Below are positions 40,301 to 41,884 of a stretch of DNA of 64,000 nt, piece after piece. The position numbers and the translations under genes are program-made. Origin of the DNA: Macrostomum lignano (taxonomy: Eukaryota). Numbering within the stretch: position 1 is the first letter of the stretch; the number at the start of each line of letters is the position of its first letter. The notes beneath the pieces were generated by a model. It made no database searches. It had not been told where the DNA came from and saw only the letters and a program-made list of their open reading frames with translations. The stretch spans positions 31,104 through 95,103 of the forward strand of contig NIVC01003490.1 of assembly GCA_002269645.1 (NCBI GenBank). The letters are read 5' to 3'.

Positions 40301-41737
40301 TTATAGACAAGAGAAGATGGGGTTTTTAGCAAATATTATAATTAAACAATACAATGCTACTATAAGTAGGCCGGCTCAATGAACTCTTCTAGTTAATAGT
40401 CTAATTGGCTTTATTAGAAGATTTTTCTATTTCACTTCTATGCAATTCTTTTCATTTTTTATATCTATGGGGCGACAGTAATAGGGGAAATTCTATATAG
40501 CTACAGTATAGGGGAAATTCTATATAGCTACAGTATAGGGGAAATTCTATATAGCTAGAGTGTAGGGGAAATTCTATATAGCTACAGTATAGGGGAAATT
40601 CTATATAGCTACAGTATAGGGGAAATTCTATATAGCTACAGTATAGGGGAAATTCTATATAGCTACAGTATAGGGGAAATTCTATATAGCTACAGTATAG
40701 GGGAAATTCTATATAGCTACAGTATAGGGAAAATTCTATATAGCTACAGTATAGGGGAAATTCTATATAGCTACAGTATAGGGGAAATTCTATATAGCTA
40801 CAGTATAGGGGAAATTCTATATAGCTACAGTATAGGGGAAATTCTATATAGCTACAGTATAGGGGAAATTCTATATAGCTACAGTATAGGGAAAATTCTA
40901 TATAGCTACAGTATAGGGGAAATTCTATATAGCTACAGTATAGGGGAAATTCTATATAGCTACAGTATAGGGGAAATTCTATATAGCTACAGTATAGGGG
41001 AAATTCTATATAGCTACAGTATAGGGAAAATTCTATATAGCTACAGTATAGGGGAAATTCTATATAGCTACAGTATAGGGGAAATTCTATATAGCTACAG
41101 TATAGGGGAAATTCTATATAGCTACAGTATAGGGGAAATTCTATATAGCTACAGTATAGGGGAAATTCTATATAGCTACAGTATAGGGAAAATTCTATAT
41201 AGCTACAGTATAGGGGAAATTCTATATAGCTACAGTATAGGGGAAATTCTATATAGCTACAGTATAGGGGAAATTCTATATAGCTACAGTATAGGGGAAA
41301 TTCTATATAGCTACAGTATAGGGAAAATTCTATATAGCTACAGTATAGGGGAAATTCTATATAGCTACAGTATAGGGAAAATTCTATATAGCTACAGTAT
41401 AGGGGAAATTCTATATAGCTACAGTATAGGGGAAATTCTATATAGCTACAGTATAGGGAAAATTCTATATAGCTACAGTATAGGGGAAATTCTATATAGC
41501 TACAGTATAGGGAAAATTCTATATAGCTACAGTATAGGGGAAATTCTATATAGCTACAGTATAGGGGAAATTCTAGATAGCTAGAGTGTAGGGACGGCAC
41601 GGGGGCAGTTTCAGTCTGTTTACCTCGTCAGATTCGCTCTCAGAGTCGGCCTCCCGATAGCATGGCCGCCCGCCTGTGGAGACTTGTGTGGCGGCCTCTC
41701 CGCCCACAACGGAACGGCTGGGCGCGAGACTTCGCCG
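28319..41737 (-). CDS. RAD54L: DNA repair and recombination protein RAD54-like (SNF2 ATPase); 6 visible coding exons, start ATG missing
   Basis: Exons (minus): 41737-41624, 34988-34827, 32448-31726, 31127-30853, 30214-29413, 28576-28319; GT-AG, phases consistent, 2334 nt (778 aa with an initiator Met). Motifs: [106 protein letters not shown]-terminal CRRC...[11 protein letters not shown]. Confidence 0.95.
28605..29405. repeat. (GACA)n microsatellite filling the last RAD54L intron
   Basis: About 800-bp tetranucleotide tract with variant units. Confidence 0.97.
30444..30660 (+). mobile_element. Possible hAT (Charlie-like) non-autonomous fragment
   Basis: CAGGGATAGGCAAACTTTTTTGCCTCAAGGGCCAGAT and GGAGGGCCGGAT resemble recalled hAT MITE ends; no matching second TIR identified. 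Confidence 0.3.
31205..31655. repeat. 22-bp tandem repeat (CCCCTGACACTAATCTCTAGTG), RAD54L intron
   Basis: About 20 copies. Confidence 0.95.
32583..32883. mobile_element. Degenerate inverted-repeat element (MITE-like) rich in GACTC/GAGTC motifs
   Basis: GTGACTCTTAAACGACTC (32583) versus GAGTCGTTAAAAAGTCAC (ending 32883) are imperfect inverted repeats. Confidence 0.35.
33085..33810. repeat. 20-bp tandem repeat (ACTATGGAGCTTTCTAAGTT), RAD54L intron
   Basis: About 35 copies; related degenerate copies at 35345-35575. Confidence 0.95.
34455..34785. repeat. (ACT)n microsatellite grading into a 24-bp repeat (CTACTACTACTACCATCCCCCCTG)
   Basis: Directly visible. Confidence 0.92.
35345..35575. repeat. 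Degenerate 20-bp repeat (TACTATGGAGCTTCCTCAGC), same family as 33085-33810
   Basis: Shared ACTATGGAGCTT core. Confidence 0.8.
36144..37477 (-). mobile_element. Full-length Tc1/mariner DD37E (ITmD37E/TRT-type) DNA transposon, 1334 bp
   Basis: Perfect 24-bp TIRs CTGGGTGAACACTTAAAATCTGGA (36144-36167) and its reverse complement (37454-37477), flanked by TA at 36142-36143 and 37478-37479. Located in the longest RAD54L intron. Confidence 0.95.
36278..37324 (-). CDS. DD37E transposase, 348 aa, uninterrupted
   Basis: N-terminal HTH-like regions ([20 protein letters not shown]); catalytic [24 protein letters not shown], with 37 residues counted between the second D and the E. Confidence 0.93.
   Translation of the reverse strand: MQSLNEEQRRRLVVQYKTEHPGQSNHAIAKYFAEVGVTRSTVYAILNRYEEGGEESVLRSAGSGCHRTELKVTNAEVKNIVKDAQRGLSQREIARKFDISQAYVGKILQENGLKAYKKEKVPAVTDQQRERQQVRVGRLYRTILDGRGGDLDLVIDDESYFHMSSQMIPGNSFYYATARGDAPVEKRVSPQKKFGDKILVWLAISRHGASRVYMCHSKTMNKELYANECIRKRLVPFLNEQHSDGNYLFWPDLASCHYAKDVIEVFQQLDINFVSKEQNPPCVPHLRPIEHFWGILKQQVYHHSWQAQTLQQLKNRIKKCLREMDWSVVHHMMGQVKSQIRRARADGF
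38424..38970 (-). mobile_element. Internally deleted mariner (DD34D) element with a transposase pseudogene fragment
   Basis: Imperfect TIRs CAAAGTGTGGCCAGAAA / TTTCTGGCCACACCTTG flanked by TA. Minus-strand translation gives [11 protein letters not shown] and [22 protein letters not shown] with stop codons. Confidence 0.85.
39536..39585. repeat. (GA)n microsatellite
   Basis: Directly visible. Confidence 0.9.
40475..41592. repeat. 27-bp tandem repeat (GGGGAAATTCTATATAGCTACAGTATA), ~41 copies, next to the donor of the first RAD54L exon
   Basis: Near-perfect array with a GGGG/GGGA variant. Confidence 0.97.
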
Positions 41738-41884
41738 CTGCAAAAGAGCAAACCGGTCGGGCTTAAGCACTAAACAGGCCGGGCTAATCCTGAAGGCCTG
41801 AACACCTACGCTTGCTGAGTCTCATTGTGCTAGACAAATTTATTTATCAAAATCTCACCCTAAATATGACAGAACTACTTCAAA

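Follow-up and report, generated by a model that had tools for sequence, protein, structure and literature searches.

Start codons donated by a spliced leader (SL) have been known in flatworms since 2006: in Schistosoma, initiation at the SL AUG has been demonstrated (Cheng et al. 2006; summary in PMC9851317), and all flatworm leaders reported terminate in AUG (PMC12582326). Here we compare with such systems the RAD54L gene of the flatworm Macrostomum lignano, as it lies in the last 64 kb of scaffold NIVC01003490.1 (assembly GCA_002269645.1; this whole stretch is hereafter called the window). We conclude that RAD54L very probably has no start codon in the genome and that its ATG is donated by the SL joined to its first exon. 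The trans-spliced status of RAD54L is already in a public table; what is new here is the explanation that the leader stands in for an ancestral exon, together with a correction of the annotation, both of them modest, and the picture of flatworm trans-splicing is unchanged.

The single SL of M. lignano has 35 nt, CGGTCTCTTACTGCGAAGACTCAATTTATTGCATG, and ends in ...TTGCATG; approximately 30% of the genes are trans-spliced, with conserved and neoblast genes enriched among them, and the enriched trans-acceptor motif is [T/C]TNCAG (PMC8629364). The terminal ATG is the only ATG within this leader. In flatworms, cis- and trans-splicing often use common acceptors (PMC12582326). An earlier interpretation of the same DNA, made from its letters alone (the sequence-only reading), had stated that flatworm SLs end in AUG and that in Schistosoma this AUG can initiate translation; the M. 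lignano leader agrees with the first statement (PMC8629364), and the second is borne out by the account of Cheng et al. (2006) given in PMC9851317.

With the SL-AUG initiation of Schistosoma mansoni (Cheng et al. 2006), the present case shares an AUG-ended leader, an in-frame exon lacking ATG and the predicted restoration of a conserved N-terminus, while here the animal is a free-living macrostomid, the gene is RAD54L, and that ribosomes use the SL AUG is something that we infer by analogy. In relation to the previous studies of the SL and operons of M. lignano (Wudarski 2017; Grudniewska 2018; Ustyantsev and Berezikov 2021), the leader is the same and the acceptor fits the published motif; RAD54L, being conserved and proliferation-related, belongs to the class that those studies report as enriched for trans-splicing, and it has an upstream neighbour on the same strand less than 1 kb away after adjustment for repeats. 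Those main texts and supplements that were searched contain no discussion of the SL supplying start codons, so that RAD54L has been deposited as a "partial" protein.

The slORFs of nematodes, Oikopleura and trypanosomes (slORFfinder, PMC9851317) are likewise open reading frames (ORFs) opened by a start codon of the leader, but they mostly use near-cognate codons and represent new or alternative ORFs, whereas in M. lignano RAD54L a canonical AUG would give an essential and conserved gene its ancestral ORF back. Canonical metazoan RAD54L, finally, has an exon with the 5' untranslated region (5'UTR) and the ATG, a phase-0 intron, and then an exon that begins with codon 2. The acceptor position in M. 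lignano is identical, but cis exon 1 is neither annotated nor evident, and the donor half would come in trans from the SL RNA. This match of the SL acceptor with the ancestral post-ATG intron was worked out here, and we found no earlier description of it.

Reading frame and splice acceptor of RAD54L

The exons of RAD54L were placed by tblastn with human RAD54L and by manual reading of the junctions, the human query being used for placement only. The elements at the gene's 5' end are as follows (window coordinates).

41822 to 41824, minus strand: in-frame TGA that closes the RAD54L upstream frame, 87 nt upstream of the exon.
41738 to 41760, minus strand: RAD54L 3' splice acceptor with its polypyrimidine tract, ccgaccggtttgctcttttgcag; proposed SL trans-splice acceptor.
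41624 to 41737, minus strand: RAD54L first genomic coding exon, 114 nt, 38 codons, ending ...SESDE, without an ATG of its own.

Read on the minus strand, the acceptor is ...ccgaccggtttgctcttttgcag/CGG CGA AGT CTC GCG CCC AGC (a slash marks the splice junction), with its AG at 41739-41738 and the exon running from 41737; the sequence directly before the exon is TTTTGCAG and the first residues encoded are RRSLAPS. The acceptor hexamer TTGCAG fits the M. lignano trans-acceptor motif, and the acceptor is kept in all three copies of the gene. The exon, which is the homologue of exon 2 in other animals, ends with ...GAC GAG/gtaaac at 41624, in phase 0. From the TGA at 41824-41822 down to the exon there is no in-frame ATG. 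The sequence-only reading, according to which the exon starts after an acceptor one codon short of MRRSLAPS and the upstream frame meets this TGA with no ATG in between, is thus confirmed at both points. Within the gene, the earliest in-frame genomic ATG is codon 187 (...VKFMYD...), and it is preceded by two out-of-frame ATGs in the spliced coding sequence (CDS).

When the SL and the RAD54L exon are joined in silico, the product is ...UUGCAUG/CGGCGAAGU... and its translation begins with MRRSLAPS. In DNA letters, the predicted junction has the leader end ...CAATTTATTGCATG and reads TTGCATG/CGGCGAAGTCTCGCGCCCAGC, the exon side being given also as CGGCGAAG. No in-frame AUG other than the SL AUG can yield the conserved RAD54L N-terminus.

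Two other starts near the acceptor were tried and rejected. The ATG at 41825-41823, the sole one nearby, is out of frame and opens an ORF of 13 codons; trans-splicing at an upstream CTTCAG/ in the outron would give a product reading M-D-stop.

Published trans-splicing evidence and database models

Grudniewska et al. (2018, PMC5816591, supplementary file 2) flag the RAD54L cluster MligTCv3c-17252.0 (Mlig028462.g4, Mlig008284.g4, Mlig028462.g3) as TRANSSPLICED, a mark given by their pipeline to transcripts whose 5' end is matched by RNA-seq reads containing the SL (PMC5730564). RAD54L is expressed and is present in the neoblast/germline expression table (PMC5816591). The supplements of Wudarski (2017) hold nothing on RAD54L, and in the eLife 2016 supplement the gene occurs in Gene Ontology tables only. 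No SL RNA gene was found in the window: the Rfam scan gave no hits, and the SL sequence is absent even at three mismatches.

The gene models point to the same place. GenBank PAA51179.1 (BOX15_Mlig028462g3, partial), which represents the window copy, has 776 residues starting from RSLAPS, with the CDS 5' end at window position 41734, which is 3 nt inside the exon; exact look-up gave no record of this copy with RRSLAPS or MRRSLAPS at its start. The copy on NIVC01001681.1 (PAA65103.1, partial) starts with RRSLAPS exactly at CAG/CGG, and the copy on NIVC01000445.1 (PAA82863.1, partial) starts with RSLAPS. All three GenBank CDSs are therefore 5'-partial and lack Met, beginning 0-3 nt past the acceptor, while in the other annotation three UniProt models continue across the acceptor (VQAFRISPACLVLKPDRFALLQ/RRSLAPS), also without Met, so that Met is missing in six of six M. 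lignano RAD54L database proteins. The three copies, which are paralogous or allelic, have intact ORFs of 775-777 codons. The annotated 5' ends of two neighbouring genes (SF3B6 and a DAG1-like gene, see below) do not lie at an AG, differ between copies and have an in-frame ATG within a few codons.

We infer the coordinate of the SL junction, 41737, because the CDSs of three copies start 0-3 nt past the AG; models that start precisely at the acceptor in three copies, together with the trans-spliced flag, are what SL trans-splicing at 41737 predicts. The proposal of the sequence-only reading that an SL joined at 41737 would rebuild MRRSLAPS is consequently supported by the published flag, by the CDS starts at the acceptor and by the in-frame SL AUG. 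The same reading had named as grounds for abandoning it an ATG exon cis-spliced to 41737 or an SL not ending in AUG; what was found is gene models without a cis ATG exon and a leader that does end in AUG.

Conserved N-terminus and a probably ancestral intron position

Vertebrates, a rotifer and an annelid have MRRSLAPS as the N-terminus of RAD54L, and nearly identical versions are MRRSQAPS in a snail, MRRSLCPS in a nematode and MRRSFAPS in both Priapulus and a sponge. The Taenia and Dibothriocephalus RAD54L matches lack the N-terminus. In all four other animals examined for gene structure, a cis-spliced phase-0 intron lies exactly between the RAD54L ATG and codon 2.

Animal of Logan run SRR18067437 (L005:1020-1110): ATG/GTGAGT ... 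TTTCAG/AGA CGA AGC, intron of 67 nt.
Snail Candidula unifasciata (L007:4001 and 6418): ATG/GTAATA ... AAACAG/RRSQAPS, intron of approximately 2.4 kb.
Annelid Lamellibrachia satsuma (L008:4001 and 13529): ATG/GTAAGT ... TTTCAG/RRSLAPS, intron of approximately 9.5 kb.
Crocodylus porosus (L009:2001-2100): ATG/GTGAGG ... CCTGCAG/CGG AGG AGC, intron of approximately 90 nt.

Since these four animals have the cis intron between the ATG and codon 2, exon 1 of M. lignano corresponds to ancestral exon 2. From the gene structures compared, the intron right after the ATG looks ancestral to bilaterians, and the leader appears to have replaced an ancestral RAD54L first exon ending in ATG, with the protein left unchanged. 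In eukaryotes, phase-0 introns that immediately follow the start codon are over-represented (PMC1626468), and therefore this route, in which a leader replaces a first exon, could be general.

In the proposed mechanism, RAD54L would be transcribed from the minus strand, probably downstream of SF3B6 in one unit, and the spliceosome would join the 35-nt leader (...UUGCAUG) to the acceptor at 41738/41737, the upstream outron being discarded. The terminal AUG of the leader, 33 nt from the cap, would be the first AUG of the RAD54L mRNA, in frame with CGG CGA AGU, and translation from it would give MRRSLAPS..., the conserved RAD54 N-terminus. In a transcript without the leader, the first in-frame AUG would be codon 187, and the product would be without the N-terminal domain of Rad54. 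On the evolutionary side, the acceptor would be the ancestral acceptor of the bilaterian phase-0 intron, and the AUG-ended leader would stand in for the first exon (5'UTR plus ATG).

If this is true, a homologous-recombination gene of stem cells and the germline is untranslatable at full length without trans-splicing, and the conserved 3'-AUG of flatworm leaders has one concrete essential function. The exact match with an intron position shared from crocodile to annelid points to an uncomplicated way for a leader to take over from a first exon, with no change in the protein. M. lignano RAD54L, present in the databases as three "partial" proteins and a set of read-through models lacking Met, would be complete once the AUG of the leader is counted, and many other M. 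lignano entries that are 5'-partial probably need to be corrected in the same way; RAD54L is also a clean, testable example in a species with transgenesis. A broader proposal, which we put forward tentatively and stop just short of calling likely, is that RAD54L is obligately SL-dependent for its start, that genes with a post-ATG phase-0 intron are pre-adapted to capture by AUG-ended leaders, and that captured essential genes keep the 3'-AUG of the leader invariant.

Alternative explanations

Several observations weigh against an SL-donated start codon. The flag TRANSSPLICED comes without a coordinate, and genes may be numbered differently from one annotation version to another (v1 in GenBank, v3 in the table). 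Over the stretches compared, identity among the three copies is 91-99%, and conservation between them therefore has little power. Protein homology searches with residues 1-334 and 1-156 gave no SL-RAD54L junction contig and no Macrostomum protein or transcript; the search with residues 1-334 yielded nothing of 600 aa or more and missed the known M. lignano RAD54L cluster of 775-781 aa, so this absence of a match is weak evidence. The representative RAD54L transcript has 2907 nt, compared with approximately 2520 nt predicted (the CDS together with the stretch up to the first AATAAA), and the excess of approximately 390 nt is presumably 3'UTR. By the Kozak rules of vertebrates, the SL AUG stands in a poor context (UGC AUG C), and an ancestral cis exon ending in ATG raises the prior for such an exon in M. 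lignano as well.

The alternative that survives best, which we consider unlikely, builds on the last of these points: the ancestral small exon (5'UTR plus ATG) would still lie upstream and be cis-spliced to 41737, as the main isoform or beside trans-splicing, the candidate donors being at 44530, 46165 and 42822. Each of the four other animals examined is arranged in this way, the intron measuring between 67 nt and 9.5 kb, and shared cis/trans acceptors are frequent in flatworms (PMC12582326). Within 9 kb upstream of the RAD54L acceptor there are 12 ATGG[TC] sites, which is about the chance expectation, and two of them deserve separate mention.

42818 to 42822, minus strand: cis candidate ATG/GTTAAC, the only ATG/GT between the RAD54L acceptor and the SF3B6 stop; weak donor.
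44526 to 44530, minus strand: cis candidate ATG/GTATGC, upstream of SF3B6; the sole candidate intact in all three copies.

The intergenic candidate at 42822, besides being a weak donor, is ATG/GC in paralogue L003. Use of the donor at 44530, whose presence in three of three copies favours a cis exon, would put the whole SF3B6 gene, on the same strand, inside RAD54L intron 1, and such nesting applies to the donors upstream of SF3B6 in general. Of the others, ATG/GTAAAT at 46165 has no match in L003, nor do 46490 and 48036, and 45066 is lost there. The site scan bears out the sequence-only reading, which had singled out ATG/GTTAAC as the sole, weak ATG/GT up to SF3B6 and had pointed to candidates near 44528 and 46160 (here 44530 and 46165). 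A cis ATG exon is absent from every RNA-seq-guided RAD54L gene model of either annotation, the six database proteins have no Met, and the gene carries the trans-spliced flag. A minor cis-spliced RAD54L isoform may exist.

Less probable still is that the SL AUG goes unused, or that there is no productive trans-splicing, and that translation starts at codon 187 or at a non-AUG codon, for example the in-frame GTG at 41770 on unspliced RNA. The weak Kozak-like context of the SL AUG would fit such a start, as would the UniProt models, which suggest that some outron-containing RNA exists. Initiation at Met187, however, would delete the Rad54_N region (residues 25-145) and MRRSLAPS, both still encoded in the junction frame, and two out-of-frame AUGs come before Met187. 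The register between acceptor and codon 2, moreover, is conserved from the ancestral ATG/intron boundary, and initiation at an SL AUG is demonstrated in Schistosoma, according to the summary of Cheng et al. (2006) in PMC9851317. That the missing ATG is an artefact (a pseudogene copy, or a first exon lost in assembly) is hardly credible, since, although M. lignano assemblies are repeat-rich and partly duplicated and minisatellites lie on both sides of exon 1, three independently assembled copies are alike with intact ORFs of 775-777 codons, the models of the older assembly agree, and RAD54L is expressed and listed in the neoblast/germline table.

SF3B6 and a possible operon

The elements of the SF3B6-RAD54L region are as follows.

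43037 to 43408, minus strand: SF3B6 (p14) CDS, single exon, directly upstream of RAD54L on the same strand.
41738 to 43036, minus strand: outron or intercistronic region from the SF3B6 stop to the RAD54L acceptor, 1299 nt, including the SF3B6 3'UTR.
41895 to 42454, no strand assigned: outron minisatellite, 29 nt x 19.3 copies, 560 nt.

The identity of SF3B6 is given by its match to human SF3B6/p14 (E = 1.9e-57); exact look-up of its 123-aa and 146-aa versions gave no record. Same-strand neighbours less than 1 kb apart after adjustment for repeats are regarded as operons in M. lignano (PMC8629364), and after removal of the 560-nt repeat the spacing between SF3B6 and RAD54L is 739 nt, which falls within this distance, with the downstream gene flagged as trans-spliced. 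The arrangement is identical in three of three copies. Judged from its position, RAD54L is probably the downstream gene of a transcription unit beginning at SF3B6, a promoter of its own in the 1.3-kb spacer being equally possible. The data suggest that SF3B6 has its own transcription start and not a trans-splice site, so that, if the pair is an operon, its leading gene would not itself be trans-spliced.

The annotated 5' ends of SF3B6 (window 43409-43500, minus strand) vary, with products of 123, 130 and 138 aa in the three copies; an AT-rich, TATA-like stretch lies upstream of these ends, and SF3B6 has no introns. Further upstream, at 44000-48000, approximately 4 kb with 31-33% GC and no annotated gene separate SF3B6 from a divergent ORF of 833 aa (50707-53208, plus strand); this AT-rich stretch may be a promoter region shared by the two or may derive from repeats. 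The 833-aa ORF has an exact match among database proteins, which clusters with proteins of M. lignano, and stretch L001 of NIVC01003490.1 is identical to window 40707-63208, in agreement with the flatworm origin assumed by the sequence-only reading. On the other side, a DAG1-like gene (26435-27070, minus strand) lies 1248 nt past the RAD54L stop, on the same strand and with its own in-frame ATG (..CPMPAEAS..), and it may extend the SF3B6-RAD54L unit.

The outron minisatellite array differs strongly in length among the three gene copies. A second minisatellite is present in RAD54L intron 1 (40475-41593; 27 nt x 41 copies), and the two arrays bracket the first coding exon.

Gene structure, identity and repeats

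Downstream of the first genomic coding exon, the remaining exons of RAD54L are as follows.

34827 to 34988, minus strand: exon 2, from homology placement and junction reading.
31726 to 32448, minus strand: exon 3, which holds the first in-frame genomic ATG.
30853 to 31127, minus strand: exon 4; the six-exon model reproduces PAA51179.1 exactly.
29413 to 30214, minus strand: exon 5, from the same six-exon model.
28319 to 28576, minus strand: exon 6, including the stop codon.

Together, the six exons encode 777 residues, starting with RRSLAPS, with approximately 65% identity to human RAD54L. The Pfam domains SNF2-rel_dom (PF00176, 1.4e-73), Helicase_C (PF00271, 6.9e-20) and Rad54_N (PF08658, 2.9e-07) all pass the cut-offs, and the Rad54_N region comprises residues 25-145.

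Exon 2 contains an alternative donor, CTG/GTAGCC (window 34875-34890, minus strand), with the exon end at 34881; the UniProt M. lignano RAD54L models use it and have 18 residues fewer. The C-terminus encoded here (28319-28360, minus strand) differs from that of the two paralogues, which end with ...EEKNACPDDE (L003:22430-22501, L004:21240-21313); a small indel before the stop codon is the cause of the differing endings, and both are represented among the UniProt models.

RAD54L intron 1 also carries, on the strand of the gene, a Tc1/mariner-like transposase with an intact ORF of 348 aa (HTH_23 and DDE_3; 36278-37324, minus strand), for which an exact protein look-up gave no record. A (GTCT/GTCTGTCT)-rich repeat, translating as CLSVCLSV or DRQTDRQT, occurs at 28600-29400, 8569-9165 and 25874-26400, that is, in several introns and intergenic stretches, RAD54L intron 5 included.

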